Assembly (NCBI RefSeq): GCF_006345805.1
Contig: NC_042997.1
Coordinates: forward strand, 206,522,001 to 206,586,000
DNA from: Octopus sinensis
Taxonomy: Eukaryota
Length of the DNA stretch: 64,000 nucleotides
Reading direction: 5' to 3'
Shown here in pieces: positions 21,310 through 55,731 of the stretch. Numbering within the stretch: the stretch's first letter is position 1; each line of letters starts with the position of its first letter. Made by a program: the position numbers and the translations under genes. The notes beneath the pieces were generated by a model. That model searched no databases. It had not been told where the DNA came from and saw nothing but the letters and a program-made list of their open reading frames with translations.

Positions 21310-24300
21310 GTGTGAGTGCCACAGACCAAGTCTGTGGATGGTGCAAAGTCCCTTCCAGACCTAGAGTTACGTGGTGGTGGAATAGTGCAGTAGACAAAGC
21401 CATTAGTGCAAAGAGACGGGCCTGGAGGGATGGGGGTAGCAGGGAACTGTACCAGGTAGCCAAAAGGGAGGCTGGGCGGCAGGTATACATAGCCAAAGAT
21501 GTAGCAGAAAAGAAGAAGTTTGCTAATGTCCAGCGACGTGAGGACCAAAGAGCTGAGGTATTTTGGATTGCCAGACAGTGTGTGAGAGAAAATAGTGATG
21601 TTACAGGAGAGAAATGTGTCCGCATGGATGATGGGGCACTTGCTTTTACTGTTGGTGAAAAGAAAGAGGCTTGGAGAAGTCATTATGAAAGACTGCTGAA
21701 TGAGGAGAATGAACGGGAGGAGGAGAGCCTGCCAAATGTTGACCCAGTAGAGGGACCAGCTACCTGAATAGACAGCTCCCTTGTAGTTAAGGCAATTAAG
21801 GATATGAAACCAGGTTAAGCCCCCGGCCCATCAGGAATCACTGCTGAAAGGCTTAAAACAGCTGGCTATGTGGGCTATGGCCTACTCACCCGCAATGTAA
21901 ACCAGGTAGTTCATAATGGAGTCATACCCAATGACTGGCGTAGCAGCACCATAGTCAACTGCTACAAGGGTAAGGGTGATGCTCTAGATAGAAATAACTA
22001 CAGGGGTATTAAACTGTTGGATTAGGTGATGAAGGTCACAGAGAGGGTCATAACCCATCTCATTAGGGAGAGAATTTGCTTAGATGGGTGTCCTTTTAGT
22101 ACAAACTTTACTGTGGTAGACGCCATGAGCTAAACCGTAACATTGGATTTTTGGTGCAAGATGTATTCTTGTTAATATCACTAGTGGGGAGATAATTCCC
22201 TGCTACTTCCAGCACTGGGACAACAAGATCACATAATATCCACCTTGTTTGGACCTTGTCAATGATGGACACATGATCACTAGGGAGTGTCAATCTATAT
22301 AACGTGGAGGGGACCTGTATTACTGCGGTCTCTAGCGGTCAAGTGTTCATCATCGATAAGTTCAAACAAGGTGGAAATCATGTGATTCGGTGACCTTGGT
22401 GCTGAAGATTTATCTTTTTGTTACTGATATGAAGAAGAGGGCATTCCAAAAAGCCTATGTGAGGGTCTTTCTCATGGCAATTACCATAGTAAAGTTGGTT
22501 CTAATGGAACATTCTTATTTAAACGGGGATAAATATTACCCCACACTAATAACTGACTGCATGGGAATGAAGAACAGTCGCAAGAAGAACCAAAGAAAGA
22601 GGTCTTAAAGTGGTCACTTGATCTGCTAAAATTAACAGCCAAATCTCTCTCACATCATACCTTGCTGCTTTATAGTGTTTTGTGAATAAATGTGGGAAGT
22701 CTTAGCCAGAGAATGGGGTCTCTCAGGTAATTTGGGTCTTTATTTGGGACTTCTTCATGCACAATGGAAACAACTTGGATTACTTGAAACATTCTTCAGA
22801 ACATCTGGAAATTAAATATTTCAAAGTGGACAAGGCTTGATGGTAAATGCACCAGGCTTTTTAAAGGGCACTGAACCAAAGAGGAAATTTGTGGACATAT
22901 TCCATCCGTCCTGGCTTTTGATGCTCAATAAAGTATAGAGTTTGCTGACCAAAGCTATTTTGCTGAACCGTTGACCATATCAGATGTTAGATTTTGGAGA
23001 TTTCCATACTTGGATAGGGAGAAAGTTCCACCTAATTACAACTGATGTTATTGCAAGAGTCCCAGAACAAGAAACAGAGAGAAAGGGGGAAGAGGGACAG
23101 AGGTAATTGGTTTGGCATTTGTGAAATGGATCTTGGCTGTGGCAGCTAGGAAGAGGAGGGGGAGGAGGGAGGAGGAGGAATGGAAAGAAAGAAGAGAAGA
23201 AAGACATACAAGCATCTATGACATTCAGTCTGCAGAATCGGAACTGACTCAGGGTCCAACAATAAATACAACAACAACAACAACAAGCAAAACATTCTTA
23301 GCGTCAAATGTTACAATGGAATATTTCAGAAGCAAGAATTTGGTGATGGGAAATGGTATAATGAAAGGATAAAGCACAACAAAATATAATGAACAGCATT
23401 AAAGGTAGCATGAAGAAAGGTACCCAGGACATGCTGTGAAGTGGTTGGCACTAGGAATGGCATCCAGCCATAGAAACCATGCCAAAGCAGACACTGGGGT
23501 TCAATAAACCCTTGTGGCTCATTGGAGCCAGTCAAAATGTTGCACCCATTCCAAAATGGAACAAGGACTGTAAATGAGGATCATTTCTATTTCCTTTGTT
23601 TCTTGTAGAATATTTTTTTGGTAAATTCCAAGAATATCAACATAAAACAACAAACAACAAATACATCAACCAACCTTCATAATTTCCGTGTCTTGAGGAT
23701 AAACCACGAAGTAAACATCTTTGATCTGGCTTGAATTTTGATTTGAGTAGTTTTTCACGGCTTCGTACATAGTTCTTGGTAGGTTCTCAATGGGGTACTT
23801 CAATATCCCAGCCCCTAATATAGGAAATGCCAAGCATTTTGCTCCCATTCTCTCAGCAGTGTATAGACAAATGGTTATTATTTGAGTCAAGTTTGCCAGA
23901 ATCTAAAAAAAATAATTGTTTAGTAATTGATAATGAACATTTTATTAAATTATTTTCTTATTACAGGAAGAAAGCATTAAGTTGTAATAAATATATCCTC
24001 CTCTCACAACTCCTCTCACTCCTACCACTTCTAAACACAACTGTCATTCCTATCACTCTTTAGTCCTGCAAGGGACAAGGCAACCTCACTCATGATGCTG
24101 CTACAATAAATCAGACCCAATCCACCGTGTAAAATGGTTGGTGAATGAAGAGAGACAATGCAGACCCAAGAGGAGTCTTTAGTGTTGTTGAGGACATGAC
24201 AACCTCTCTAGTGCTCGTGCCATGACAGAGAAAAACTCACCAATACAGAGAGTAAAACAGAGAAATATGTTTTAATATAGTCTTATTTATCAGTCACATA

Positions 24301-27300
24301 ACTGTTGTTAGGCCATGAGGCTTTTTTCCTTCTATTTATATATAAAAGTGTCCTGTTCATCGATATCTTCTGCTTCCTTCCAATGATAACTTGGAAGAAC
24401 AAATATTAAACAGGATGCTGACATTTGCTTTATGATTCTCACACAACATGCATAAGGTTCTCTTCAAACATTAACTGTTTCAATAAATCAATATCATATG
24501 ATTGATACTTACTAAATCAGAGGAATTTTCATCCCAGAGAGGTAATACCAGATGAAATACATTCTTACATTTGAGGTTATATCCTTTAGTGATGGCTATT
24601 TTAGATGTAGAAATACCTTGAGGATATCTCTGGTTACATTCATATTGTATCTGTGAACCAGCAGCATTGAGAATAGAATTGGAAATAGAACCCTTGTTAA
24701 GCTGGAGCCGTTCATTGGTGCTGTTAACGATGACATCAACCTACAAAAGTAATTAATGGTAAACAACTAAGGAACAGTCCATGGAGAGAAGAGAGATACA
24801 TTGTTGCAGTTGATATTGTTGTAAGAAAGGCTCTACAGAATGGCTGTAGTAAGTTTGAGGTTGTTAAAGTTAGCAAAAGATATACTCAAGATATCAGATG
24901 TGAAGGAAATAAAATGTTTGAGTTAGATTGAGAAAATGTTTTAATTAACTGTAATGATTCCTCATTTGGAAATGAAATAACAATTAAATATAAATATGTT
25001 AAGTGAATCTATTTACTCACAGATGCATTAGAAATTGAATCAATCATTAGTTGTATTTTGATGCCACGATTCTTTGTCAATGCCACATTAGTTCTGGGTG
25101 CCACGGAGGATGATTCCTGTTTTGATGTTGTGGTTTCTGAAAATAAACAAATATCAGTGTGTGTATGTGTGTGTATAGGTATACACACACACACACACAT
25201 ATATATATATACCAACATCATCATTACCCCCCCCCCATGATGATATAATGTCCATATTCCATCCAGGTCCAAGTTGAACAAAATGATATATAAAGACACA
25301 TTTGTCACAGCAAAAGTCATGTCCAAAAACTGTCCATGCTGGGCCCTACACCCACATCTGTCCCTGTGAAGCATCCCCTTCACCACATCTCATCTTCCTA
25401 ACACCCATCCCTCTATTATACTCTTCTAACTATGGTCCTACTTTACTGCTGTAACCATTTGAGAGCATTCAATACCGACCATACCCTTTCGTTAATACCA
25501 GTCGCCTCACTTGCATCATCATCTCTGTCCATACAACCTTCCATCGATCATCCCTTTCTGTCCCTTCCCTAATCTTTCCCACCCCCCCTCTTAGCTACAC
25601 CTTACTCTGCCAGGTTTCCTGTTGAACACTTATCCTATCTGCAATCATTCTCAACACCCTCTCACAGCCATTGCTAAAACTCCCTCCAGTTTTCTGGCCC
25701 CACTCACTACAGCCACCCCCATGTATCTCTGACTCCCATCTCTTTCACAGTTCATCATCTTTGCTTTCCCTCTGCTGTCAGATCCTGGTCATCATCTCCC
25801 TTCCTCCTCATCTATCAACAGATTGATGGTTCTGCTGCTCTCCACCCTTCCTATGCTGCTTCTTGTCACCTCCTCCTTTCCGAGCCCCATCAGTCTCTCA
25901 ACTCCACCTCAAACCATTGTTCCTCACTTCCTACAACCACCTCAAGCCCCATCTCTAACCTCTGCCATTCTCATCTCACACTCTGATGCCATTACCCTCC
26001 CATTCCTTCTTTCCTCATCCACAGTCTCCCTTCTACTCCCCTTCTTGTAACTTGGGACTATGCTCTTGCACCCTATTACCACCATCTTTCTCCCTTCTAG
26101 ATACTGTCATGCACCCTTGCATAAATATAAGGAGGCCATGAATCTCCTCTATATCCAGACAACTGTGCTTGACCCTTTGGCAAACTTTAGACTTTCTACC
26201 CCCTGGCAACAATTCCATCGGGGGTTTTTATCCTTTTCCATTCTTTGCTTTGTTTTGCAAGATACTTAGTGACCTCACCAGTGCTGGTGCCATGAGAAAA
26301 GCAGCTTTCACTCCACACTGTAAAATGATAGGCATTTTGAAGGGCAGCCAGCCATCCACACTCAGCCAGCTGCACTCAGCTAGCCAGCTGCACTCAGCCA
26401 GCCAGCTGAGTGTGGAACCTAACACAGATCTAGAGATTACCAGATCTTGTCAAACTGATGGACATTAAATAATGATGATGATGATATAGAAATAAGTGTA
26501 AGACACCCTCAACTAGGAAAACAGGCATTCGTACATTTGTTAATAGAGTAGGTAATTTACCATCAAAACTATACAGTATTATAAATCCATTTCAGCCATT
26601 CTTACAAATGAGTTTTGCACAGGATATCATCTAACACTGTGCTCATCAGAGAAGTAGGGCAATGGTTTCTGACAGCAAGTGCCACATCTCTAATTGCAAG
26701 AGACAATTAGAGAGGAGGATTCCATCATTGGTCATGCCACTTGTCCAAAATCTCTGAGTGAGGAGTAACTGCCAGCAAAGTGGAATTTGGGTTTTAATTA
26801 AGCATCTGGGTGGTGAGAGTTCTTAAATATAAGTTCTCTTTTTGGCAAGGCACAGACTTCACCTTCTGCTACCATTGAAGTAAAGGTTACTTTCCTTCGG
26901 CAATCATAACATGCGTAGCCATGTAGGTGGCATTTTTCTCTCATAGACCTTAAAGGAGGTCTTGGGATTGTTATATATGGTTCTGTATGGACCTTTTAGT
27001 CACGTCCACATATTTCCACATGTTCTTCTATTTGCTGAAGTAACATTCAAATGATACTGAACGGAAATAAACACAAGTTTTCACTGTATAATCTGCTCAA
27101 TATTAATACAAAGACAGTTCATAATTACTGGGAAAATATTTAAACAGAAAAAAAAATGAAAATGTTTTCTCACAAAACTGACTGACACAGCTTTGAGAAG
27201 CACTTTAGGTTGTTCTAAGCAGAAAATAAAAGTGAGAACATCTGTGTAGTATCAGAGCTCATTCTGTTTAAAAATGCAGTTTTAATAATGCCCAACATGG

Positions 27301-28939
27301 TTTCTGAAAACCATTTGACCAGACTATTTGATGGGAAGATTCCATTGCCCTTGGTTATACATCAGCTGATCTGATTGGCCAAGCCATGTTCACAGAGGTG
27401 TTAGTGCCTTTCATAGAGGCACAATTTATTTTCCCTAATTCAATATGTCTGGCTGTGGTCTTAGCTGTGGCAGCATGTGGTAAGTGAGAAAAATATTGGT
27501 TTCAAAGCTAAATGCTAGAAACATAACTCTGGCAATAAACTTGGCAATATGCTGGAATTCTGAAGTGGAGAGAGTAGGAGTTGGAGAGGAAGGCAAGAAA
27601 GCTCATAACGATGATGCATGGAAGCCATCATCCATGTGCAGACACAGATCACCTAGACACGATGAGAGCAAAGAGAGGAAAAGGGACGAGATACCTAGCC
27701 GAAAGTAAGGAAACCTTGCTAGTGGCAGCTAGGAATGAGGGAGTATTGAGAGCAGAGAGAAAAAAGGGAAAACAATGAAAGAAGTACAAAAGGGACGTGA
27801 AGAAGGGACCACATAATGATTTGCATGTAACCACAACAGAAGTTGCAGGAAAACCTAAATGGGATTGACTGAAGAAAGGAACACTGAAAAAAAGAGGCCG
27901 AGAGCAGCACCATACTGGCAGTGCAAGGCCAAACTTTGGCCATGAATTAAAGGGTGAACCTTAGGAATGAGCAAGTGTCTTTGCTGTGCCGCATCTGTAA
28001 CAGAGTGGTCAAAACCATTATGCACATCATGAATGAATGCCCTAGACTTGCCCAAATTGTGCCACTACAAATTGCGGCAACATGATAATTAATGAAAGTG
28101 CCACATTGGAAACTGTATGAAAAGTGGGGGTTAGAGAGAAGCAAGACTTGGGATGAGTATAAGCTTCAGAGAGTGGGGGAGTTGAAGACTTGTAAAATCT
28201 TCTGGGACCTCTCAATCCAAATAGATCAGGTACTAAAGCATAAAAAAAGGACTGGGCCCAGTGGTGGTGGACATGATGCACCACATGTGCTACATAGTTA
28301 ATGTTGCATGTCCCTTTGACCTATGAATAATCAAGGACGAAGGTAAAAAAAGGTAGATATATATAATCATCAGAGCATGGCTATGGGAATGATGGAAGTG
28401 AAGGTAGTACCAATTGTTATTGGGTCCTTGGGGGCGTTTTTGGAAGGCATCAAGGAAAATATAAAGGAAATTGGAATAGAGTGCCCAGTAGAAATGTTTA
28501 CAAAAGGTTTGCCTCCGTGGCATGGCCAGGATAATCAGGAAAAGAATGGATAGCATGGTACCGTAGGTCGCAGGTAGTAAGCCTGCTATGTATGCAAGAC
28601 TCTAGGAGTTCCAACAAAGCCTGTGATAAAGAGATAATAATAATAACAATAAAATGGAAACAGACCGCAGTGAATAGCAAACAGCATGGATGTGTGACAG
28701 CAAGCTACCAGGAAGATTCCTTAAAACTGAAACCATCATGAAGGAGGAATTAAAAATGCATAAAATCAATGAAAGAAAACTAGGTCATAATGGGACCATA
28801 ACAGGAAACAGACAGATTTTGCTTATATGGAGCATATATATATATACAAAAGTATAGCTCCCCCCAAAAACACTGCTACAGCATGTGCATAAAACTGCAA
28901 ACCTGTGAGTAAAATTTAAGATTTTAATTACATTATACA

Positions 28940-28981
<42 letters not shown>

Positions 28982-31900
28982 AGACCTCTATATGTATATG
29001 CACATTCCTATTTCTTCTTAGTTTCTCACAGATACATCAAAAATAATTATAACTGTAAAAGAAACATCAACACATCAACTATCGGCAGGGTTCAGTGAAA
29101 AAAGGTAAATGCTGCAAAGAAGGAACCCATAACTAAGCCAACAAAGAAAAAAGAAAAAGAAAGGCAGACAGATAATGATAAATGCTAGGAAATGGAAAAA
29201 CATACAAGAATAAAGTCATACTGTAAATACAGAACAATATGAACAAAAACATGTGTCATAGAAAGCCGATACCCAACAAAAGAACACAAGATCAGGCAAC
29301 GGGAAGTAGAAACAACAAGATAAGAGATACATCTCAAAGCAAAGAAGAACCTAAAGGGAAAAATAACAATAGTTCTACCAATAAGGAAGAGACAACTGGC
29401 ACCATTGACTTAAGTGATTTAAGTGAGAAAGATCAGAAGGTTTTAGATAAGTTACAGGAAGTAATGAGTGAAGAAGTAAGAAAAAGATTAGCAATATTAA
29501 AAGGCACCAACAGACAGAAGCTGCTAGAAATGACTAGGAAAGTAGACTCTGTTATCAGCAGGATGGATACTAAATATATAGGAGACAAAAATTTACTGAT
29601 CTATGCAGAAAGGGTTGTAGTGACCAGAAGATTAGATATCTCACAGGGAAAGACTAGAAAAGAGCAAATGTGGAAAAGGAGACTACAAAATAAAGTGAAG
29701 ACCTTAAGACAAGATCTGAGTAGAATAGAAGCCTGGAAAATGAACAAGATAGGAAACACAAGATGCAAATCTTTCCTTGAGAAAAGGTACTTAGTCAAAG
29801 AGAAAGGATTTGGGGCAGTAATAGAAAAGTTGAAACCGTGTGTCATAGCAGTAGCAGGCAAGCTTTCCAGATATCAGAAAAGAATAGATCAGTATCAACA
29901 GAATAGAATATTTAAGACAGATCTGAGGAAATTTTATAACCAGATAATTAATGGAGAAGGAAGTACTGAAGATGAGAAACCTAATGCAGAAGAAGTGAGA
30001 AAGTTCTGGAATAATATTTAGGATGAGTCAGTCAATCATAATCGAGATGCAGTATGATTAAAAGAAGTGAGGGAAAAACTAGATTTGACTGAGAGGCAGC
30101 CAAATCTAATACTAACTAGTGAATCATTGAATAAAGTGTTAGGAAAAATGCCAAATTGGAAGGGCTCAGGACCAGATTTAGTCGAAGGGTCCTAATTAAA
30201 GAAATTCATGGGCTGCTGAGGGAATAATTTGAGGATTGCCTTAATGGATGAATAATACCAGATTGGACGACAAGAAGGAGGACAATACTCATTATGAAGG
30301 ATAAGAGCAAGGGTAAAACAGCTAGCAATTATAGACCAATCACTTGTTTACCATTAGTGCGGAAGCTGTTAACAGGAATGCTTTCAGAAAGCATTTACAA
30401 GCACCTTCACAACCAGAGTTTATTGCCAGAAGAACAAAAAGGTTGCAGGAAGAAGTCTAGAGGAACACATGATCCATTATATAGAGACAAAGCATTTCTA
30501 AACGAAGTAAAAGCTAGAAAGAAAAATCTAAGAATAGCATGGATAGATTATAAGAAAGCCTATGACATGATCCCACACTCATGGCTAAGTGGATGTTTGA
30601 GTATATTCAGTAATTGCAGACAACAAAAGAGAATTAATTAGCTTCAGCATGAAGGAATGGAAAGTAGATCTCTGCTCAGGTGACACACTCTTAGGAAAAG
30701 TTAATATCAAAAGAGGAATTTTCCAGAGGGAGTCGTTGTCCCCTTTAATATTTTGTCTTGTGTTTGATCCCTCCCCAGTTAAGTATTAAGGAAGGAAAGA
30801 GGCCAGATATGAGTTCAGAAATAGTAAGGGAAAAATTAACCATTTGCTCTACATGGATGATCAGAAGCTTTTTAGTAAGAATGAAAAAGAGATAGATCCC
30901 TTAATACAGAATGTAAGATTCTTGAGCAAAGATACAGGCATGGAATTTGGCATAGATAAGGGTGCAATATTAGTAATGGTGAAAAGGGACAGGCAGTCAA
31001 CAGTGAAGGCATCCAATTACCAATTGGCCAGACATTGAAATCATTGAAAGGAGGAGAGTGTTATAAGTATCTAAGAGTATTAGAATCTGACAGGGAACTA
31101 ACTATAGAAATGAAAAGGAAAATTGAAAAGGAGTACATCAGAAGGGTGAGAGGAAGTTAATGAAGTCAAAGCTAACTGGTCTGAATCTAGTGAAGGCTGT
31201 AAATACTTGGGCAGTATCCTTACTTAGATACTCGGCAGCTTTTGTAGATTGGACAAAAACTGAATTAGTAAAGCTAAGCAGAAGAAGTAGGAAGGAATTC
31301 AATATGAATGGAGGATTCCACCCAAGGGCAGGAGTAGCAAGATTGTACCTAACTAGAAATGAAGGAGGTTAATATCAGTTGTAGACAGTGTGGATTTAGC
31401 TAGAGTAGATATACACTCATCTGTAGGTAATAAGGAAGAAAATTTACTAAGAGCTGCTCGAGTCACAGCATGACAAAGGCAAACCAAAACATCAAAACGA
31501 AGTTTAAAACCAGAAAAAAGAATAGAAATTGTCTGAGTGGCAGGAGAAGGCTTTGCATGGTAGATTCTCAGAGAGAGCTGGAGCACGTAGTAGTAGTGCA
31601 AAATGGTTATGCTAGCAGAAAGGAAATCTCAAGAAGGAGACAGAAAGTTTGTCAGTAGCTGCTCAAGATCAAGCATTAAGAACTAATTGAATAAAATTCA
31701 AATAGAAAAAAAACAAGCAGATTCCCAATGTAGGGTAGGCAAATAAAGAGGAAAGTGATACAATAGGCATAAACCCAGTTTAGTACAGCTGCACAAAATA
31801 GTATTATTAGGGAGAACTATTGTACTTAGGAGGGTTCTTGGCATGTAAGGCCACTCGTTGTAGCCCAAAATGAGGATTCTTTTCTTTTCCAACAGTCTAA

Positions 31901-35644: not shown

Positions 35645-35682
<38 letters not shown>

Positions 35683-38457: not shown

Positions 38458-38493
<36 letters not shown>

Positions 38494-38534
38494 ATAATAA
38501 TAATAATAATGAGAAGAAGAAGAAGAAGAAGAAG

Positions 38535-38566
<32 letters not shown>

Positions 38567-43805: not shown

Positions 43806-43851
<46 letters not shown>

Positions 43852-43866
43852 GTAGTAATAGTAATG

Positions 43867-43915
<49 letters not shown>

Positions 43916-46495
43916 TAATAATAATAATAATAATAATAATGATAATAATAATAATAATAATAACAATAATATTAGTAATAATAATCAGTGATGTTTAATA
44001 GAGAAGACACCATAACATTCAATATCAAGAAGCAAATTGTTTACCTTTTGAATGAACTCCTTCATTTACTGGTTTATTTAGGAGATATTCATCAAATTTC
44101 TGTAAAAATCAAAACCATGATTATCATTTTTGTTTAATTTTTTGCTTTTTTTAAAGAGAAGAGATTTAATTTAACAAAAGACAAACAAAATATTTGAAAT
44201 ATTTAATGATTTCTTTCTAATCAGTAATAAGGAAATGAGGAAAATTACTTTGTCACTCAGATCAAAGATATTCCATCCACGACCTTCCAGTCTACTGGGA
44301 GACATGGTATTGCAGTGGATGCGGCAGAAAAACCTTCCACTGTGACCACTGATGTGGTGTTAGTGAAGTTAAACATGTGGCAATGGTGTCTTAATGTAGC
44401 TGAAGTTGTATTGTTTCTTCTTTCCACTCACCATTCTCATTAAAACTGCTGAGTCTTGTGTTTGCTGTTGAAATGTCTATCAAGAATGTTGAAGTTGAGG
44501 TTCTTTGGTGCATCTTGTGTAGCCAAGAATATTTGAGCAACAAAAGCAGAGTACAAGGTAATTATTTTCATATTGTAAGCAAGAAGAAGGAGAAGGAGGA
44601 GGTCCAACAATTAGGATCATGGTCATTCATAAGAGAGATGACAAAGGAAAAGAGAAAAGATTCAAAAAGAAAGAACTTCACAAACAGTTCTACAGTGGAC
44701 AGGAATTTCCCCTATTTCTTCATTACAGCATATGGACATAAAGAATGCCTTTTGGTATTAACACTGCTTCTGTTGCTATTAATTATCTTTAATAAGCCTT
44801 CAGGCTATTTGTGACATCACTGTCTATATATCGTTGACAGGGAGATTTGGCTGTTATGCTGCTACAGGGCGTCTGTCACTGATGAAACTGAGTAGAGCGA
44901 AAATACATGATCTGGCAGTTCTGGTGCCTGTAGCAGATGATTGTTGTCTACCAACAATATAAATTTGCATGCTTTTATGGACCGTGCATCCATATGAGAG
45001 GTCCTCTCAAGGTAAAAAAGGCAGTATTTGATGTTCTAACACAACATCCACATTTAGTTGGATATAAAGATTGCCTCTTGGTATTAATACTGCTTCTGTT
45101 GCTATTACTTTTAATTATCTTGATATAGGTTCAGTGATGCAAAAGACATCAAACAAAAAGCAAAGAAGGCTTGCATGAATAACATGGAAGACAACTGGAA
45201 GGGTAAACTCCTGCATGGAAAATACCCTAACTACCTGTCCAAGCCAGACATTGATCAAAATCTAACACGCCAATGGCTGCAAGGGACAGGTCTGAAAGGG
45301 GGAAACAGAAGGTTTTGCTATTGCAGAGCAAGATCAGAGCTTACCTACCAAGCAAATGTCCTTAAAGATGGATCTGACCCCTTGTGCAGAATTTGGAGGA
45401 AAATTCACAGAGACAATTGATCATGCTGTTTCTGGCTGCTCAGTCCTCGGTGAAAAGGAGAACCCAATAAGACATGACAAACTAGGTCAGTACATGCACC
45501 GGAATGCTTCTAAAATACCTACAAAATTAAATCCCATGATAAGTTGTACAAGCACCATCCAGAGGATGTAGTAAATGGCAAAGGCATCACCATTCTCTGG
45601 AACTTCCCAATACAAACAGACAGAAAAATTGACTCCAGTCGACCAGACATTGTGATCTAGGACAACAACAGAGGAACTTGTCTGTTAATAGATATGTCTG
45701 TCCCACAAGATCAAAATGTCTCAAGAAGAGAATACGAAAAGCTTTCTCGCTATGAAGGTCTGCAAATTGAAATCACAGAAATGTGGAAGCTTAGCCCTAC
45801 GATAATACCAGTAGTATTTGGTGCCTTGGGAATGATAAAGAAGGGAGCTAAGAAATATATTAAGCAACTCTGGTAAGATCAATCTCCTTGAACTATAGAA
45901 GATAACCTTGATGGGTACAGCCCTTATACAACAGAAAGCACTTTCTGTCAAAAATGGAATATATGTGGTGATAAGTTTAGTATGCCTAACAAAACAAAAG
46001 TGCCCTTACTAATCTTGGCCTCAGGAGGATGCCTGGCACTATGACAGTTTAAATAAAGTTATCATGAAAGGAAACTATAAGCAACAACAACGGCATCAGC
46101 AACAGCAGCAACACCACCACCGACAACAACAACAACAAAAGGTGGATCATAGATATAGCATGCCCACCTGACAACAAGGTATGCGATAAGGAAGAAAGAA
46201 AAGTCGAGAGATATGACAGGTTAGCTTGGGAAGTTAAGCAGTTGTGCTTGATGAAAAAGGTAGCAGTAGTACCAATAATTGTCAGAGCCCAGGGAACAGT
46301 GAGCAAAAATCTTGTGAGGTATGTAGAACAAATAGGGGCTGCAATAAGAGTGGAGCACTTGCAGAAAGTAGCAGTGCTTGGAGACACCTTAATACTCTGG
46401 AAGGTGCTCAAAAAATAAGATGTGTTACCTTAGTTCACTGGTAGTGAACAGCTGACACTGTAATACATCTCTAGCGTTAGAAGCTGTGCAAAGGC

Positions 46496-46527
<32 letters not shown>

Positions 46528-47872: not shown

Positions 47873-47927
<55 letters not shown>

Positions 47928-50900
47928 TTAATAATAATAATAACAACAACAACAACAACAATAATATTAATAAGTATTAACTGCAAGCATAAATAAACTG
48001 TATATGGAAAGAAAGAATGGTGGCAGAGGTCTAATTAGTATAGACTATTGTATAAGGAGTGAAAGGAGAACGCTTGCTGAATATTCGATAAATAGTGATG
48101 AAGATCTTCTGCAATATACTGGGACAATTGATAATTTTAAATGCTATGGGTAGAACGATGGGAGGGTACTGATAATCACAGTGATTATGGAGGCAATACA
48201 ATGCAAGCACATTATTTATATATATATGTGTATATACATACATGTGTACGTGTATATACAAATAGAGGAAGAGAGAGATGGGATCCCAATAACAACTCAC
48301 ATAGGTAACCCATGAATGACTCATGAAATCATGATGCAACACATCAAAGAAAGAATTAAAAGTGAGAATGAAGCTATAGCCAATTATGGTGAAGGTTTCC
48401 CGCCCGGCATGTGTGAAACCACTAGCATCAAGGGCAGTGATCTGGCCTCGGATGATCACAACAGATCATATACACGGTGTGCATGAAAACAGACATAAGT
48501 GGACGAAGGAAGAATATTTTACACTTATTGAATGTCATGAAAGAGCAAAGCTGCAAAGAAGACACAGAGTAGGGTGATGGACCTTGAAATTTTGGATGGA
48601 AAAGGACATGCGTCCAAAGTCAGAAAATAAACTAATGAAACCCGTGAGAGTAATTAGGAGGAAGAGTTACTTAACTGGAGTAAAAATATCTCAGATAAGT
48701 GAGAGTTTGAGAGACCCAGCAGATAGGCTTCAAAGGATGGTCAGAGTTGAAAGATGTAGGAATTGAAATCAGAGAGAAGAGTAGACAGGAGGAACAGGAG
48801 AATGGTGATGGAGCTGTTAAGGATGAGGAATGGGAATGTTGTAGAGTAAACCCTGACGCTGTGGTGGGTGCACACGCAGGGGAAATGAACCAACTAGATA
48901 ATGAATTGCTTGAAATTCAAAGACGACTCACCAACCTGATCAATGCTCCAGAAGAAAACATTCCCATGAACATGAGAAAGGTAGATGGAAGAATGATAAA
49001 TAAAGTAACACAAAAGGTAAATACTGTCATACTGTACATCAAGACAGAGGACGTGACGCAAACTAGGAATCTTCTCCGAGCTATTGCACTACTTGTTGAG
49101 GAGAAATTACAACTTAAGAGAACAAAAAATGGTGGAGCGAAAGAACAATGGTGGAAACGACACATTGAAAGGGACATAATGCGGACAAGGCAAGATCTAG
49201 GAAAAATTGAGCTATGGTTAAGAGGAAACTGGAAAAATGGGAAAAAAACCGACTGAGAAAAATTAAAGAAGAAATATGAAATACGGAAGAATGGGTTTGA
49301 TAATAGAATAATTAAAACAGAGGATCATGGCAAAAAGCCAAAAGATCAACAGATTTGTGAACAGAAATAAGCAGTTTGAGGAGAACAGATTGTTCAAAAA
49401 TAATCTGAAGCAATTCTTCCAAACATCAGAAAGAGGCAATGGAGAAAATGTGGCTCCTGATGCAAACCAAACCAAGGAGTTCTGGAGCAGATTATGGGGG
49501 AACAATGTGATGCATAAAAGGATGAAATGAGGATAGGAACTATCAAGAAAGAATTACAAGGAAGAAAGAAACAAAGGAATATTGTCATAAGCATGGGTGG
49601 TGTGGAAGAACAAGTGGGTAAAGTGCCTAACTGGAAAGCCCCCAGACTAGATGGGATTCATGGCTTCTGGCTGAAAAGATGCCATGTGGTGCATGAAAGA
49701 CTAATAGCCAAATTGAATGAGTGTGTCCAGAAAGGTATAGTTCCCATGGAGATGGTGACTGGGAGGAGAACACTTGTAACAAAAGAGAGAAGAAAGGGGA
49801 ATATTGTAGGGAAAGTACCATCCCTTAGCATGCCTAAACATAATCTGGAAGATACTCACTGGAATGTGTGTGGCAAAGACATACACTTTCCTAGCACAGG
49901 AAGAAATACTACCAAGGGAACAAAAAGGATGTAAGAAGAGTTCTCAGGGTACCAAGGATCACCTGGTCATCGATAAAACAGTTCTGAGGCATTGTAAAAA
50001 ACAGCATACAAACATGTCTGTGGCTTGGATTGACTTTAAGAAGGCATATGATATGATGCCTCGTTCTTGGATCGTTGAATGCCTGCAGATGTTTGGCGTT
50101 GCTGACAACATCACAAATTTTCTGATGCATAGCATGAAAGAGTGGGAAACCAAATTGTAGTCAAGTAATGTATTCCTTGGAGAAGTTAATATTAAAAGGG
50201 GAAACTTCCAAGGCGTTACTTTCTGTAATTGCACTCATTCCCATAACAATGACACTTAGGAATGTTAAGATGGGTTACCAATGTGGGAAGAAAGGCCCAT
50301 CATTGAACCATCTTCTGTTTATGGATGACCTGAAATTGTTTGGGAAATCTGAAAAACAGATAGATTTCTTAACCAAAACAGTCCAGAAGTGTGGTAGAAA
50401 CATCGGTATGGTATTTGAGATTACCAAATGCTCAGTACTTAATATGAAAAGTGGGAAGAAAGCAGCCGGCAGAGGATTGCAGTTACCATTAGGAGAGACC
50501 ATGGGTGAACCCGATGGTGGTAATGGGTATAGATATTTAGGGACTTTGGAGCTGGATGACATTCTACACAGAGAAATGAAAGTCAAGGTCAGTGAGGCGT
50601 ATCAAAAAAGGGTGAAGATGGTGTTGAAATCCAATCTGAATGCCAAAATTTTGATTACTACAATGAATATCTGAGCAGTTGTGGTGGTCAGATATAGTGT
50701 GTCCATCCTCAAATGGACTAAGGAGGAAATATCAACACTGGATAGAAGGGCGAGAAAGCTGAGGACGCTGCATGGGGCGCTACAACCTAAAGCAAATGTA
50801 AACAGACTGTACATGAAAACGAAGAATGGTGGCAGAGGACTAATTAGTATAGACTATTGTATAAGGAGTGAAAGGAGAATGATTGCTGAGTATTTGATGA

Positions 50901-53900
50901 ATTGTAATGAAGACCTGCAGCAATATGCCGCGAAAGATATGGAGGTAAATGCAGCTGAAATGATGGGCAAGGAAGAGTTTAACCAAAGAGCCGAGGAGAA
51001 TAGAAAAGAAGACCTTCTTGAAATGAGAATGCATGGACAGTTTGAAAGGAATACACAAGACTTTAAGGATTATACAGCATCGTAAGTATGGCTTGAGCGA
51101 GGTGATTTGAAGTATACCAATGAAAACCTGATCTTGCTGCACAAGACCAGGCCTTGTTACCAATTTAGTTAAGTATAACATCTATAAAACTTCTGACACT
51201 CAGAAATGCAGACTCTATGGAAAGAGTATGGAAAATGTGACTGACTTGGTGAAGTGGCTGAGAGAGCCTTGCACAAAAAGAATACAAGCACCGTTACGAT
51301 AAAGTGAGTGAGTATCTTCATTGGCCCTTATGCCATAAATACCAATATGAAGTAACAAAGAACTGGTATGAGTTGTACCAAAAAAAGTTATGCAGGAGGA
51401 TGGAAAAGTAACGATACTCTGGGACTATGATTTTCAGACGGATCGTGTAATTGAACACCGTCGGCCGGATATTGTCATATTGAATAAAAGAGAGAAATAC
51501 TGTCAGATCATTGATGTAGCCATACCAAATGACATGGATGTTGTGAGAGAAGAGGTTGAAAAAATTACCAAGTACTCCAAATTGAAAGGGGAAATGGTAA
51601 GACTGTATGGAATGCGAGAGGGTAATGTAAAAGCGATACCAGTGGTGATCGGAGCGTTGGGCTCAATCCCATTGAAACTTCAAGACTTCTTTAGGCAACA
51701 GGAAATCCCATGCAAGATTGATGTCTTGCAAAAAAGCAGCCTTAATGGGCACAGCGCACATCTTAAGGAAAGTATTATCTGTCTGAGGTCCTTGTTGTGA
51801 CTTGACAGATGAGTAAATATTCCAGTGTAGTTTACCTACACTGTGTTATGAAGGTAAAATATGAATAATAATAATAATGGTAATACAGTGCCACAATGCA
51901 ATACCAAGCAGTGGCTCTCATGGCTTATGATCTTAACTGATTGGAAGTGTTATCATGTACATTGTTTTGTCCTGGTATAAAAGATGGGCTACAGCAAATA
52001 TTCTGCTCAATACCACAGTTGTTTGACCTTAACCAGTTGAGCATGTCTCTTAGTGGCTGATGATATATGCATCTCTGATCATGAGCAGAAGTATGGGGAA
52101 GCATTATAGCCATGTGTTGAGAGGGATTCTTTGGAGTTTGAATAAGTCAGATCATTGATGTAGCCATACCAAATGACATGAATGTTGTGAGAGAAGAGGT
52201 TGAAAAAATGACCAAGTACTCCAAAATGAAAGGGGAAATTGTAAGACTGTATGGAATGCAAGAAGATAATGTGAAAGTGATATAATGTAAAAGGGACATT
52301 CTAACATTCTGGGACAGATCCTTCTCATTGATGTCCAGAGTCTCCTCAAGAACGTTGTACTTATCTGCCAGTAATCCTCTATATAATGCTAGAGTGGAAC
52401 TTCCACTGTCCACATTGCCCAACTGACAGAGGCCTATGGGAACCTGAAGATACTCTAGGTGGCAGGTACCCTGCCTTGGTCTATGCTTAATCCAGGACAC
52501 AGTTTGAACAAGCTGTTGAAAAACCTGTCTGACAAATGGTAACCACATCTGCTCACTGTCTACAAAGCTTTTTGTTGTATTCCCCGTGTTGTTGTTGTTG
52601 TTGTATTCTGTGAGGCAGGTAATCATGACAGAGCAAATATAGGACACAATAAGTCAGTCAAAGAACAGGATGAGGCCATCAGACAAGCAGTCTACCTAGG
52701 ACTACATTACCCACTCTCTTCTGTATTCTTTCATTCTTATATTTTATTTATGCTTTTTTTATATTTCATCTTATAAGCTAAGTAACATTGTGACCATCCA
52801 TACATATAGGCATGTCCCTTACAAACATGACCCACCTCTCACACATAATTCTATTGTCTACCAAGCTCCCTCACAACCCAACTTTTCCCCCACCCCACTG
52901 TAGGCTCCTCCACTCTCTCTCGCCTATCTGCACACTGTCCATGTCCTCACATATCTACCACACCCCCAGCCATTCTAATGTCCTCTCACTATCTCTAAAC
53001 ATCTCCCCTCATACTCTTATTGGACATACCCCTCTATCCTCCCCTCTATATTACTGACAGAATCCCCATTGTTTCCTGTGGGAAGAAATATGGAAAGAAT
53101 TGTGGAAAGAGTTTCCAAAGCGTTCCACTTTGAAGAACAGAAATGAAAGAAAACCATCAGTGTTCTGGTGGTGCCATTAACACATTTTTGGTTGGTCAGT
53201 AACCAAAATGGAATTGTTGAAGGATGTTGTGGGTAGGTAGTGGTAGTGGTGGTAGTTGTAGAGGAGGAGGTAGCTACACTGAATCCATATCAAGTTACAA
53301 AGAATTAAATCATGGAATGGAAGAGTTGAAGAAAACCAAGCTAACCTAAAAGTATGGAAGACAGGGCCATGAGACACATCAAAGATTCCAACATTCCAAC
53401 TGAAGAATTCTAAGACACCAACAAATAAATTTACAAAACTGATTCCATATTTTTGTTTCTATTTTCTTTATTTATTGCAGAATATTTCCTTTGGTAACTT
53501 CCAAAAATGTAAGACAGAGTGTAAATGTATTGATTGAAAAGTTGGACAAGCATCAGATGTGGTGTGCAAGAGCGACAACTGTGCTGGTATGGTCATGTGA
53601 TGTGTATGGATGTGGACAGCTGTGTGAAGAAGTACCAATTTCTACCTGTGGATTGAAGCTGTGGAAATGGAAGATCCAGAAAGACAAGGGACAAGATGTG
53701 AAGCATAATCTTCAAACATTGGGCCTCACAGATGACTAGTGACCGAGACCTTTTGTGATATGCCATGCTTGAGAAGAGCCGTCAAGCCAAGCGAATTCAT
53801 AGTTGTAGACATTGTCAGTGTCACATAACTGACTAGCCCCTATGCTGGTGGCATGTAAAAAGCATCTTTCAAGCGTTGGGCCTCATAGAGGCAAACTGGC

Positions 53901-55638
53901 AGTTGCCAGTGTCATGTAAGTGGCATCCATGCCAGTGGCACATTAGAAGCACCCATTACATTCTCAGAATGATTGGTGTTAGGAAAGGCATCCAGCCATA
54001 GAAACCATGGCAAATTAGACCGGAGCCTGGTGCAACCCCTCAGTTTGCCAGCACTGGTTAAACAGTTCAACCCATGCCAGTTTGGACAATGGATGTTAAA
54101 TAATGATGATGATGATCATCATCATCATAAAACAACAAACAACAAAAACATCAACCAACCTTTACTATTTCTGTGTCTTGAGGTAAAACAACAAAGTAAA
54201 CATCTTTGATCCAGCTTGAATTTCGATCTGAGTAGTTTTTCACTGCTTCATACATAATTCCAGGTAGTTTTTCTATGGGGTATTTCATTTCAGCCCCTAA
54301 TATAGGAAATGCCAGGCTTTTTGCTCCCATTCTCTCAGCCTTTTCCAGACAAGTGGTTATTATTTGAGTCAAGTTTGCCAGAATCTAAAAAAAATAAGTG
54401 TTTAGCAATTGATAATGAACATTTTATTGAATTACTTTCTTATTACAGGAAGAAACCATTAAGTTGTAATAAATATATTCTCCTCTCACAACTCCTCTCA
54501 CTCCTACCACTTCTAAACACAACTGTCATTCCTATCACTCTTTAGTCCTGCAAGGGACAAGGGAACCTCACTCATGATGCTGCTACAATAAATCAGACCC
54601 AATCCACCGTGTAAAATGGTTGGTGAATGAAGAGAGACAATGCAGACCCAAGAGGAGTCTTTAGTGTTGTTGAGGACATGACAACCTCTCTAGTGCTCGT
54701 GCCATGACAGAGAAAAACTCACCAATACAGACAGTAAAACAGAGAAATATGTTTTAATATAGTCTTATTTATCAGTCACATAACTGTTGTTAGGCCATGA
54801 GGCTTTTTTCCTTCTATTTATATATAAAAGTGTCCTGTTCATCGATATCTTCTGCTTCCTTCCAATGATAACTTGGAAGAACAAATATTTAACAGGATGC
54901 TGACATTTGCTTTATGATTCTCACACAACATGCATAAGGTTCTCTTCAAACATTAACTGTTTCAATAAATCAATATCATATGATTGATACTTACTGAATC
55001 AGAGGAATTTTCACCCCAGGGAGGTAATGCCAGATGAAATACATTCTTACATTTGAGGTTATATCCTTTAGTGATGGCTATTGTAGATGTAGAAATACCT
55101 TGAGGATATTCCTGGTTACATTCATCTTGTATCTCTGAACCAGCAGCAAAGAGAATAGATTTGGAGATAGAACCATTGTTAAGCTGGAGTTCTTTATTGG
55201 TGTTGTTAACGATGACATCAACCTACAAAAGTAATTAATGGTAAACAACTAAGGAACATTCCGCAGAGAGAAGAGAGATACATTGTTGCAGTTGATATTG
55301 TTGTTAAGAAAGGCTCTACAGAATGGCTGTAGTAAGTTTGAGGTTGTTAAAGTTAGCAAAAGATATACTCAAGATATCAGATGTGAAGGAAATAAAATGT
55401 TTGAGTTTGATTGAGAAAATGTTTTAATTAACTTTAACGATTCCTCATTTGGAAATGAAATAACAATTAAATAAATAAGTTACATGAATCTATTTACTCA
55501 CAGATGCATTAGAAATTGAATCAATCATTAGGTTTATTTTGATGCCAGGATTTACTCCAGATGCCACATTAGTTCTGGGTGTCATAGGGGCTGCTTTCTG
55601 TTGTGGACCAGGAATGGATGAGCTTGATGTTGTGGTTT
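9452..55638 (-). CDS. PARP14/PARP15-like: Gene B model: macro-PARP, Macro-Macro-PARP catalytic domain, mono-ADP-ribosyltransferase type. Exons 55502-55638, 54995-55222, 54160-54384, 44045-44099, 25021-25136, 24513-24740, 23675-23902, 19039-19093, 12513-12646, 11950-12127, 9452-9714; 5' end not found
   Basis: All exons have AG acceptors and GT donors with compatible phases (1-0-0-0-1 per macro module, then 1-0-1). Summed length 1847 nt = 2 nt + 615 codons including TGA, no internal stop. Motifs: VDVIVNxT, AITKGYNLKC, LAFPILG, WHGT, YGKGVYFA, QAYPNYLITF. Joining all exons into one transcript is inferred. Confidence 0.8.
10075..11090 (+). mobile_element. Decayed Tc1-family transposase in a gene B intron
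   Basis: N-terminal ...NQREQAIG...HPHSGRPRVITTR; SPDSNPIEHLWD (Tc1 SPDLNPIE motif); C-terminal SGHTRY; stops and frameshifts. TIRs not identified. Confidence 0.85.
11950..12127 (-). CDS. Gene B PARP domain exon 2 (IERIQNKTLCQRY...LWHGTTAECVERINRYGFNCRYCSKNG)
   Basis: Same 178-nt length and splice sites as 1190-1367; WHGT motif. Confidence 0.92.
12513..12646 (-). CDS. Gene B PARP domain exon 1 (EPIPDTWSPM...VTSGSEY...RIIK)
   Basis: 134 nt, AG/GT; 3 nt differences from 667-800, all amino-acid changing. Confidence 0.88.
12860..14750 (+). mobile_element. Decayed R4/Dong-like non-LTR retrotransposon (RT, CCHC, restriction-like endonuclease)
   Basis: FQGDS, YVDDLKL, HHPKADADRVYLPR, DHLISGC, IKANKPEIVL, PVIVGALG fragments with stops. 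Confidence 0.88.
14715..15130 (+). repeat. Tandem reiteration (about 4 units of 95-140 bp) of the LINE's last codons and 3' UTR
   Basis: Repeated cacatcacacacactgagaagagaattgccactgtgaatttt followed by T-rich tracts. Confidence 0.8.
15600..17990 (-). mobile_element. Internally deleted L1/Tx1-like LINE remnant
   Basis: APE endonuclease start (VGCVNVCGLRSALKHNHFLND...AFSKTRI) at 16773-17030; HPLSGGLGMAWL near 15960-16000; degenerate zinc knuckle near 17930-17990. Confidence 0.7.
19039..19093 (-). CDS. Gene B 55-nt linker exon after macrodomain 2 (KFEEYFQGNTTGSSAASS-G)
   Basis: ctaacAG acceptor, GTAAAT donor; phase 0 in and phase 1 out, which joins IMK| to |AA CCA; same length and KFxEY start as 44045-44099. 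Confidence 0.75.
19600..20380 (+). mobile_element. RTE-type LINE 3' fragment
   Basis: RRLCWYGHVAR...EGTCGRGRPMKTWDEVVKHDL followed by the 3' UTR repeats. Confidence 0.8.
20385..20545 (-). mobile_element. Penelope GIY-YIG fragment
   Basis: CKTRNVVYRMKC...TTYIGEIVRSL. Confidence 0.65.
21310..22085 (+). mobile_element. RTE-type LINE internal fragment
   Basis: TWWWNSAVDKAI, EAWRSHYERLLN, KGKGDALDRNNYRGIKLL. Confidence 0.8.
23675..23902 (-). CDS. Macrodomain 2, C-terminal exon (ILANLTQII...LAFPILGAGILKYP...VYFVVYPQDTEIMK)
   Basis: 76 codons, AG/GT; AFPxxGxGxxxYP macrodomain loop. Confidence 0.9.
24513..24740 (-). CDS. Macrodomain 2, middle exon (VDVIVNSTNERLQLNKGSISNSILNAAG...AITKGYNLKCKNVFH...)
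   Basis: 76 codons, ttttgtAG acceptor, GTAAGT donor; VDVIVNST, AAG and ITxGYNLxC motifs; not in the ORF track. Confidence 0.92.
25021..25136 (-). CDS. Macrodomain 2, N-terminal exon (ETTTSKQESS...GIKIQLMIDSISNAS)
   Basis: ttttcAG acceptor, GTGAGT donor; 2 nt + 38 codons; leads directly into VDVIVN. Confidence 0.85.
26790..27030 (-). mobile_element. Penelope-like GIY-YIG C-terminal fragment
   Basis: YRTIYNNPKTSF and YFNGSRR*SLCLAKK resemble the PLE motifs RYNNHKxSF and CxLCLxEK. Confidence 0.45.
27430..28660 (+). mobile_element. Decayed R4/Dong-like 3' fragment
   Basis: KLNARN, VHWKLYEKWGL, VPIVIG motifs; TAA tail near 28636-28650. Confidence 0.75.
29200..31770 (+). mobile_element. Decayed R4/Dong-like LINE (N-terminus and RT)
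   Basis: 260-aa ORF fragment; ASNYRPITCLP, WIDYKKAYDMIPHSW, LYMDDQKLF, VNTWAVSLLRY. Confidence 0.85.
31950..33728 (+). mobile_element. R4/Dong-like RT fragment, near-identical to about 49751-51447
   Basis: LFMDDLKLF and other RT motifs; shares lesions with the second copy; no 3' tail. Confidence 0.9.
35195..35685 (+). mobile_element. Dong-like 3' end with (TAA)n tail
   Basis: ILWDFMIQRDHETENRKLDIV; 3' hairpin GTTCACT-GGT-AGTGAAC; TAA tail. Confidence 0.8.
35950..37860 (+). mobile_element. Penelope-like element remnant with inverted terminal segments
   Basis: Degenerate RT near 35990-36150; GIY-YIG HLVYAAECTKHNLVYVRCTKEQLNKRLNGHR at 36670-37026; inverted repeats 37364-37408/37615-37660 and about 37178-37220/37815-37860. 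Confidence 0.7.
37900..38450 (+). mobile_element. R4/Dong-like 3' fragment
   Basis: ILWDFDF, IIDVAMPGD, VIPIV motifs, ending in a microsatellite. Confidence 0.7.
38444..38590. repeat. Compound microsatellite (TAC)n(TAA)n(GAA)n(GAC)
   Basis: Visible directly. Confidence 0.95.
38800..42418 (+). mobile_element. Nearly full-length R4/Dong-like non-LTR retrotransposon, frameshifted
   Basis: N-terminal KWTREEY, RT (FQGDTLSPLLF, YVDDLKLY), CRICG..ETINHIISGC, RHD; the endonuclease KPDIV motif reads KPGIV. Interrupted at about 42420 by an RTE/SINE insertion. Confidence 0.92.
42420..43325 (-). mobile_element. RTE-type LINE 3' fragment with (GAT)n tail
   Basis: EKLEVVDSFRYLGD...GRGRPRKTWDEVVKHDL. Confidence 0.8.
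43810..43985. repeat. Long (TAA)n microsatellite, probably a LINE tail
   Basis: Visible directly; ends about 60 bp from the linker exon's donor. Confidence 0.9.
44045..44099 (-). CDS. Gene B 55-nt linker exon after macrodomain 1 (KFDEYLLNKPVNEGVHSK-G)
   Basis: tttttacAG acceptor, GTAAAC donor; same length and phase as 19039-19093. Confidence 0.75.
45150..45950 (+). mobile_element. R4/Dong-like 3' fragment
   Basis: KLLHGKY, DHAVSGC, RPDIV, PVVFGALG. Confidence 0.8.
46140..47975 (+). mobile_element. Two head-to-tail Dong-like 3' fragments, each ending in (TAA)n
   Basis: First ends at about 46525 and the second starts immediately after; RHHDNIARLVHW...RKPDIV; same 3' hairpin at 46433-46449 and 47810-47826. 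Confidence 0.85.
48380..51880 (+). mobile_element. Full-length-like decayed R4/Dong LINE
   Basis: HKWTKEEY N-terminus, RT, RRPDIV endonuclease, TAA tail at about 51864-51878. Confidence 0.88.
53509..54120 (+). mobile_element. RTE-type 3' fragment inserted just downstream of macrodomain 1
   Basis: RTE C-terminal motif and GAT tail; absent at the homologous site of module 2 (about 23640). Confidence 0.75.
54160..54384 (-). CDS. Macrodomain 1, C-terminal exon (...LAFPILGAEMKYP...LPQDTEIVK)
   Basis: 75 codons, one fewer than the paralogous exon; AG/GT. Confidence 0.9.
54995..55222 (-). CDS. Macrodomain 1, middle exon (VDVIVNNTNKELQLNNGSISKSILFAAG...)
   Basis: 76 codons, AG/GTAAGT; paralog of 24513-24740. 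Confidence 0.92.
55502..55638 (-). CDS. Macrodomain 1, N-terminal exon (ETTTSSSSIPGP...GIKINLMIDSISNAS)
   Basis: 2 nt + 45 codons, AG/GTGAGT. Confidence 0.85.
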
Positions 55639-55731
55639 CTGAAAATAAACAAATATCAGTGTGTGTGTGTATAGACACATACACACACACACACACATAC
55701 CAACATCATTATTACCCCCCATCATGATATA

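Follow-up and report, generated by a model that had tools for sequence, protein, structure and literature searches.

In snake venom PLA2 and conotoxin genes, conserved introns are combined with hypervariable exons, a pattern described as 'accelerated evolution', and for the conotoxins a mutator acting on coding DNA was once proposed. In the major histocompatibility complex (MHC), as in plant resistance gene clusters, exon diversity occurs together with homogenised introns and with haplotypes produced by conversion. The present work concerns a gene of Octopus sinensis with a similar appearance, a PARP14-like macro-PARP gene on the minus strand of contig NC_042997.1, and in particular two of its macrodomain repeats, A and B, which lie in a stretch of 64,000 nucleotides (positions 206,522,001 to 206,586,000 of the contig) that is called the window below.

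Islands of divergence are known in duplicated genes that undergo gene conversion, such as the primate red and green opsins, colobine RNASE1B and the pair RHCE/RHD, and conversion is found together with diversity in MHC class I and class II and in plant resistance (R) gene clusters (PMC3924837). Homologues of PARP14 are known in molluscs (PMC10221186), and the same source cites Daugherty et al. 2014 for recurrent positive selection on the macrodomains of primate PARP9, PARP14 and PARP15. A literature search for a published macro-PARP expansion in octopus or other cephalopods returned nothing relevant.

A preliminary description of the window noted that A and B share a nearly identical intron between exons that differ in many amino acids, took the exons to diverge faster than their intron, and proposed that gene conversion homogenises the non-coding DNA while selection keeps the domains different. 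The reading that we consider probable after the analysis reported here is that the introns are homogenised in concert, and that the exons hold an old pool of variants which is reshuffled among the copies and kept by diversifying selection.

Layout and Divergence of the Repeat Pair

The annotated O. sinensis protein P0175 ('PARP14-like', 1275 amino acids) matches both repeats and the last PARP exon of the gene with 100% identity, and since it maps across both repeats and the PARP exons, A and B are successive macrodomains of one gene. In a self-comparison of the window, their homology is confined to 23636-25201 versus 54121-55699, and the flanks outside this block are unrelated. The homologous unit, here called a cassette, consists of exon W (linker and first strand), exons Y and X (the two halves of the macrodomain) and two internal introns, and all exon borders of the cassettes are AG/GT. 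The parts of the two cassettes, in the direction of transcription, are the following:

55499..55639, minus strand, exon W of cassette B, disordered linker and first beta-strand (P0175 residues 661-707, tblastn 100%)
54995..55222, minus strand, exon Y of cassette B, first half of the macrodomain, 228 nt, phase 0, Pfam Macro
54385..54994, minus strand, internal intron 1 of cassette B, 610 nt
54160..54384, minus strand, exon X of cassette B, second half of the macrodomain, 225 nt, 3-bp deletion in loop 2
25021..25137, minus strand, exon W of cassette A, linker and first beta-strand (acceptor ttttcag, donor GTGAGT)
24741..25020, minus strand, internal intron 2 of cassette A, family diversity 0.039
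24513..24740, minus strand, exon Y of cassette A, 228 nt, the 'middle exon' of the preliminary description
23903..24512, minus strand, internal intron 1 of cassette A, 610 nt
23675..23902, minus strand, exon X of cassette A, 228 nt

Differences were counted in a MAFFT alignment of 23500-25400 with 53985-55900. Intron 1 (23903-24512 versus 54385-54994) aligns without gaps and has 9 mismatches in 610 positions (1.48%), while exon Y (24513-24740 versus 54995-55222) has 19 in 228 (8.3%); both counts agree with the preliminary description, whose 14 amino acid changes in exon Y are reproduced one for one. Exon X (23675-23902 versus 54160-54384), which had been overlooked, diverges more than exon Y, with 31 mismatches in 225 positions (13.8%) and a 3-bp indel, and the second intron, between W and Y (aligned at 24742-25066), has 12 in 323 (3.7%). 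When each exon is compared with the intron by a Fisher test, p = 6e-6 for Y and p = 1e-11 for X. By the method of Nei and Gojobori, exon Y has 2 synonymous and 17 non-synonymous changes, with proportions of differences of 0.040 at synonymous sites (pS) and 0.096 at non-synonymous sites (pN); for exon X, pS is 0.271 and pN is 0.107. For the two exons together, the ratio of non-synonymous to synonymous divergence (dN/dS) is 0.64.

The Contrast in the Cassette Family

A six-frame search of the whole assembly gives 142 exon matches, corresponding to about 65 cassettes. About 30 terminal PARP exons are also present, and the genome carries at least 60 cassettes, with 1-4 per annotated gene model in roughly 25-30 genes. 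Most are located at 205.3-208.2 Mb of scaffold 1, the largest, and others at 211.0-211.6 Mb, at 41.0-41.4 Mb and on unplaced contigs. On six of the latter (C8751, C9505, C10142, C9066, C9483 and C9336), cassettes and flanks are identical or nearly identical to copies on scaffold 1; such duplicates are probably haplotigs, and the copy counts are therefore probably inflated. The sample analysed consists of 60 cassettes in addition to A and B, 62 in all, among which 8 are broken (pseudogene copies) and 54 have intact frames; 48 of the latter are non-redundant.

The contrast between exons and introns is a property of the whole family and not peculiar to A and B. Among the 29 non-redundant cassettes with an intron 1 of 558-611 bp, the nucleotide diversity, read along the cassette, is 0.159 in exon W, 0.039 in intron 2, 0.107 in exon Y, 0.034 in intron 1 and 0.120 in exon X. 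Near the exon borders, over a distance of about 40-80 bp, the diversity climbs steeply, and the sequence beyond the cassette is unalignable across positions. Many cassettes share 96-99% identity with A in the intron but only 84-92% in the exons. The excess is also present at synonymous sites, which are 3-6 times more diverse than the introns, and at codons where the amino acid is invariant the synonymous diversity is 0.143, or four times the intron value.

Recombination among Cassettes

The cassettes are mosaics, which exchange sequence by non-allelic recombination and gene conversion. When distance matrices are calculated segment by segment, those of adjacent segments are mostly uncorrelated (Mantel r of 0.03 for Y versus X and 0.04 for intron 1 versus X), the exception being Y versus intron 1, with r = 0.42. 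By the four-gamete test there have been at least 17-19 recombination events in each 228-bp exon, and the flanks on the two sides of one cassette, upstream and downstream, are often closest to those of different copies. There are also pairs, such as L046/L058 and L041/L086, with outer flanks less than 1% apart and yet with exons 5-12% apart; some values of 0.000 for upstream flanks, produced by short free-end alignments, were disregarded as spurious.

The introns behave differently. In clean recent duplicates they diverge like the flanks, but when the flanks have reached 5-12%, the introns remain at 2-4%. Because they are flank-like in recent duplicates and saturate thereafter, the introns are neutral in rate but repeatedly homogenised. 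The proposal that non-coding DNA in this gene is homogenised by gene conversion, or else by unequal recombination, therefore holds in view of the uncorrelated segments, the number of events per exon and the closer similarity of introns within the species than between species (below).

Similar introns would also be expected if they contained a functional element, such as an RNA gene or an enhancer, or if their identity were an artefact of assembly, caused by collapse or polishing. The 610-bp intron has 42 matches in the genome, every one inside a cassette, and a search of the introns against Rfam gave no matches, with sub-threshold matches to microRNA families only in a TG/TA simple repeat at 25140-25213; a transposon or an RNA gene is thereby rejected. 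Functional constraint on the introns is rejected by the equal divergence of introns and outer flanks in recent duplicates, and the introns differ by 8% between species. As regards an artefact, each copy has private substitutions and indels of its own, the intron lengths vary from 558 to 611, and the same cassette is present in the independent assemblies of O. vulgaris and O. bimaculoides. The chance that either explanation is correct is very slim.

Standing Variants and Other Octopus Species

Of the 51 exon positions at which A and B differ, 45 (18 of 19 in Y, 27 of 32 in X) have both of their alleles represented elsewhere in the family. From this it follows that the differences are mostly reassorted standing variants of the family. 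The private differences between A and B number 6 in the exons and 3 in the intron, and the density of singletons per copy is 0.45-0.61% in exons and 0.34-0.43% in introns. The exon excess is made up of shared variants at intermediate frequency.

Consider, in this light, the possibility that A and B arose by a recent duplication, the age of which is given by the 1.5% divergence of their intron, and that their exons have since changed in an arms race with dN/dS well above one. The 17 non-synonymous against 2 synonymous changes in exon Y are as expected from such a history, and so is the family-wide excess of non-synonymous change in that exon, given in the next section. However, dN/dS is below one for the two exons together, pS exceeds pN by a wide margin in exon X, the flanks of A and B are unrelated, the exon X of A is nearer to copies 0.6-0.9 Mb away than to that of B, and 45 of the 51 differences pre-exist in other copies. 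A history of this kind is very unlikely. The notion that exons diverge faster than their intron is likewise not sustained, since most exon differences are shared with other copies, synonymous sites take part in the excess, and fixed differences from another species are fewer in exons than in introns.

The last point follows from a cassette of O. bimaculoides (L091). Between its introns and those of each O. sinensis copy the distance is 7.9-8.1% (minimum 6.1-7.1%), compared with 3.3-3.9% within O. sinensis, while its exons are 12.2-12.4% from the O. sinensis copies, compared with 10.7-12.2% within the species. The introns are thus closer within than between species and the exons are not, a classical mark of concerted evolution for the introns and of older, trans-specific variation for the exons. 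Fixed differences make up 3.0-4.3% of the intron sites but only 0.9-1.3% of the exon sites, and the numbers of polymorphic and fixed sites are 294 and 6 in exons and 180 and 33 in introns (odds ratio 9, p = 2e-8).

These data also bear on the idea that hypermutation targeted to coding DNA raises the synonymous and the non-synonymous rate alike. A synonymous diversity several times that of the introns is what such a mechanism would produce. Private mutations are, however, nearly as dense in introns as in exons, private or fixed differences of the O. bimaculoides cassette are less frequent in its exons than in its introns, and when an O. vulgaris cassette (in L092) is compared with its nearest O. 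sinensis copies, exons and introns diverge equally, by 1-4%, with neighbours that are mosaic. Exon hypermutation was rejected on the singleton densities and the fixed differences between species, and we give it hardly any credence.

Selection on the Exons

Selection on individual codons was estimated with a script of our own, similar to FUBAR, which combines the MG94-F3x4 model with a separate IQ-TREE tree for each exon and weights a 10x12 grid of rates by empirical Bayes. The diversity in the first round of neutral simulations was 0.04, compared with an observed 0.11, and the simulations were rerun at matched diversity. The results are:

Exon Y: omega 1.65; P(beta>alpha) at least 0.95 at 14 of 76 codons and at least 0.9 at 17; purifying at 4
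Exon X: omega 0.61; P(beta>alpha) at least 0.95 at 3 of 76 codons and at least 0.9 at 6; purifying at 22
Neutral mosaic simulations (omega = 1), 3 runs: omega 0.91-0.94; P(beta>alpha) at least 0.95 at 1-3 codons and at least 0.9 at 2-8; purifying at 6-12

Positive selection on exon Y is therefore supported, with a signal above that of the neutral simulations, and the selection with dN/dS above one that had been proposed for these domains is supported for this exon, but neither for exon X nor for the A/B pair as a whole.

The hypervariable codons have up to 7-8 amino acids among the 48 copies, and when the cassettes are aligned to the structure 3Q71 these codons fall on both sides of an invariant glycine in loop 1, on helix alpha-1, and in loop 2, which reads GAG-x-LKYP. 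These are the parts of a macrodomain that surround the diphosphate and distal ribose. By this alignment, the variable residues would flank the ADP-ribose cleft.

The position of exon Y matters for how its diversity is to be understood. Exons W and X lie near the two ends of the 1.57-kb block, and less frequent conversion is to be expected there, which may add to their divergence, chiefly to the high synonymous diversity of X. The mechanics of exchange alone would hardly explain the peak over Y, since Y is central in the block and lies between two homogenised introns.

A further possibility is that no selection for diversity is needed, because the exons, as the only segments that can be aligned in every cassette class, exchange with a large and old pool while the 610-bp intron is exchanged only within a younger class of cassettes. 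For 16 of the 48 non-redundant cassettes, or about a third, only 85-139 bp of the intron are shared with A and the centres of the introns are unrelated, and the exons of these 16 are no farther from the exons of class I than class-I exons are from each other, with the exception of X in the 41-Mb cluster; the distances between exons are the same within class I as from class I to classes II, III and V. A PARP duplicate in the window also shows a conversion patch that runs past an exon into an intron. When exons exchange in the whole family and the 610-bp intron only in its class, the contrast between them is by itself no proof of selection, and class-limited exchange could perhaps yield part of it, about 2-fold. 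Scaling with copy number, by our estimate, would predict this 2-fold effect and not the observed 3-6-fold, and neither omega of one or more with 6-8 amino acids at single codons of exon Y nor the steep climb of diversity where Y meets the homogenised introns on either side is explained. We regard neutral class structure as an unlikely cause of the whole pattern.

As a separate observation, the cluster at 41.0-41.4 Mb (L042, L043, L046, L058 and L069) has a distinct X exon, with pS of about 0.35 and pN of about 0.23 to all other classes, and a Y exon drawn from the common pool (pS 0.076).

Besides the class structure of the intron, several points weigh against homogenised introns with selected exon diversity. 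By the Nei-Gojobori method, the family-wide synonymous and non-synonymous diversities are 0.107 and 0.116 in exon Y, a ratio of 1.08 with a confidence interval (CI) of 0.76-1.62, and 0.218 and 0.127 in exon X, a ratio of 0.58 (CI 0.42-0.82). Positive selection on exon X is not supported, its dN/dS lying in the range 0.4-0.6 and not above the neutral null. The site test is home-made and was calibrated with only eight simulations, recombination inside the exons violates any single tree, and the test between species consists of one O. bimaculoides cassette. Finally, some comparisons between near-identical 'paralogues' may be comparisons between alleles, for example L046 (on C1) with L058 (on C9494), the flanks of which differ by less than 1% and the exons by 5-7%. 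We regard the support for diversifying selection as strong for exon Y and weak for exon X.

The Host Gene and Its Domains

That the repeats are macrodomains of a macro-PARP, as first described, is confirmed by Pfam, by the mapping of P0175 and by structural similarity. The Pfam Macro family (PF01661) matches A with 75.1 bits and B with 64.6 bits at a cut-off of 22, and W, Y and X joined give E = 6e-21. The best solved relative of the cassette is macrodomain 2 of human PARP14 (phmmer E from 2e-24 to 3e-38). An AlphaFold2 model, with a predicted local distance difference test (pLDDT) score of 86.9, is matched by Foldseek to 3Q71 with a template modelling score of 0.85 and a root-mean-square deviation of 1.7 A, which corresponds to the three-layer alpha/beta/alpha macro fold, and the first 23 residues of exon W are disordered in the model. 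The cassette reads NSTN...NKGS where macrodomain 1 of the family reads NAAN...RGGV, and thus lacks the NAAN / G-G-G catalytic loop of macrodomain 1. By sequence and model, the cassettes are of the PARP14 macrodomain-2 type and are putative readers of ADP-ribose without hydrolase activity.

The other parts of the gene in the window, with a further segment beside cassette B, are:

55735..55860, minus strand, extra W-like segment directly upstream of cassette B, candidate pseudo-exon, with tblastn matches
44046..44105, borders approximate, minus strand, linker exon KFDEYLLNKPVNEGVHSK that joins B to A (P0175 residues 856-875, tblastn 90%)
19040..19096, borders approximate, minus strand, linker exon KFEEYFQGNTTGSS... 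after cassette A (P0175 residues 1066-1084, tblastn)
12510..12647, minus strand, PARP-domain exon a (P0175 match, tblastn)
11948..12148, minus strand, PARP catalytic exon b with the LWHGT motif (P0175 match, tblastn)
9455..9715, minus strand, last PARP catalytic exon with the stop codon (P0175 residues 1189-1275, 100%)

Tandem macrodomains and a C-terminal PARP catalytic domain are thus found in one polypeptide, in P0175 and, by Pfam, in proteins of the family; Pfam PARP matches the exons of a paralogue on the plus strand and also family proteins. The PARP exons show LWHGT and GVYFA motifs; enzymes of the PARP14 type are marked by an H-Y-hydrophobic catalytic triad and by mono-ADP-ribosyltransferase activity, an activity that is putative for this gene. 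Family members are built from an N-terminal region, a canonical macrodomain-1-like domain, 1-4 cassettes and the PARP catalytic domain. For a WWE domain, which in PARP14-type proteins stands between the macrodomains and the PARP domain, there is no Pfam match at E<=0.001 in the family proteins P0001, P0003, P0004 and P0005; a WWE-like stretch in P0005 was noticed by eye alone, and the gene in the window appears to be without that region. At residues about 640-660 of P0175, which are encoded upstream of the window, macrodomain 1 is only a fragment (AANGRREHRGGVAAAIVQK) fused straight to cassette B, and this is either a true loss of most of the domain or an annotation error.

The W-like segment upstream of cassette B belongs to a tandem copy of the region of the W linker exon (55733-55876 versus 55509-55652, 91% identity), which the annotated P0175 does not include; it may serve as an alternative exon or be a pseudo-exon. 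Cassettes B and A are 30 kb apart, separated by a transposon-rich intron; the region from 25.2 to 54.1 kb is packed with retrotransposon-like open reading frames of the reverse-transcriptase type, for example at 29227-30021, 38769-39848 and 41071-42348, and contains two copies of the same element (31942-33729 and 49649-51446) that are 97.8% identical.

At the other end of the window, 532-4163 (plus strand) and 9046-12768 (minus strand) form a tail-to-tail inverted duplication of the 3' ends of two PARP14-like genes, encoding P0165 (plus) and P0175 (minus). The two copies are mostly 1-4% diverged, PARP exons a and c included; exon b is an outlier (1169-1375 versus 11942-12148), with differences at 30 of 207 sites (14.5%) and with 8.2% in the adjoining 525 bp of intron, which looks like a conversion patch imported from another paralogue. 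When the last PARP exon (9455-9715) is compared with its paralogues L093-L111, from 13 genes, the synonymous diversity is 0.071 and the non-synonymous diversity 0.105, a ratio of 1.47 with a bootstrap CI of 0.78-3.5, and the intron upstream of it is unalignable in 100 of 105 pairs. The PARP catalytic domain may also be fast-evolving at the protein level.

Discussion

The explanation favoured here would work as follows. A continual exchange of sequence among cassettes would homogenise both internal introns within the species, while the exons would keep a much older pool of variants, partly common to O. bimaculoides, that is reshuffled among the cassettes and not erased. The contrast between A and B would then be mostly a sample of this standing pool and not a divergence accumulated since a recent duplication. 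Diversifying selection on residues of loop 1, helix alpha-1 and loop 2 would remove homogenising conversions and favour new combinations. As to function, such a system would suggest that a mono-ADP-ribosyltransferase is fitted with a germline-encoded set of ADP-ribose readers that differ in specificity.

Octopus is, to our knowledge, an animal without interferon or adaptive immunity. A bolder proposal, which we offer tentatively and hold to be possible but well short of probable, is that about 60 cassettes, joined in varying numbers to mono-ADP-ribosyltransferases, form a germline repertoire of ADP-ribose readers in octopods, shuffled and held under balancing selection at the rim of the cleft, that serves recognition in the manner of R genes or the MHC, with ADP-ribosylated molecules or viral antagonists of ADP-ribosylation as its targets. 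An arms race between octopus macro-PARPs and viruses, as the preliminary description had proposed, can be suggested by analogy with mammals.

What appeared as a paradox, exons less conserved than introns, can now be measured as concerted evolution in which the exon diversity is protected. It points to a large and unreported expansion of PARP14-like genes in octopus, likely an immune gene family. If the diversity is adaptive, the family offers a tractable invertebrate system for the targets of macrodomain readers and for the drivers of macro-PARP conflicts; if neutral class structure suffices, it is a warning that, in a multigene family, selection should not be read from an exon-intron contrast alone.

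Comparison with Known Systems

In relation to the venom genes, the octopus cassettes are alike in that introns diverge by only a fraction of the amount seen at synonymous sites in the adjoining exons, and in that dN is close to dS. They are unlike PLA2 and conotoxin genes in that the excess is shared standing variation, and since the density of private mutations is equal in exons and introns, faster substitution is not the cause in octopus.

As in the primate PARP9, PARP14 and PARP15 macrodomains, there are signs of dN above dS in a macrodomain exon, and the protein family is the same. The mammalian genes are single-copy orthologues in which selection is seen as substitutions between species, whereas the octopus genes have expanded greatly, differ in how many cassettes each of them carries and evolve in concert.

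The likeness to the divergence islands of the opsins, RNASE1B and RHCE is twofold: the introns of paralogues are closer within the species, with the exons reversed or equal, and the divergence peaks over exons between homogenised introns. Those systems consist of two genes with few fixed functional differences, whereas in octopus a domain unit of 1.57 kb is repeated in about 60 cassettes within and between genes, and the exon variation is a reshuffled multi-allelic pool.

With the MHC and the R genes, the octopus family shares an excess of old, trans-specific variants at intermediate frequency in what are putative ligand-binding exons, raised synonymous diversity linked to it, reshuffling in short tracts and the presence of pseudogene copies. 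It differs from them in that the variation described here is that among paralogous cassettes of one assembly, and in that the domain is predicted to be an intracellular reader of ADP-ribose and not a receptor for peptides or effectors. The kind of evolutionary system is thus a known one, and what is unusual here is that the unit is a domain cassette and that there are about 60 copies of it.

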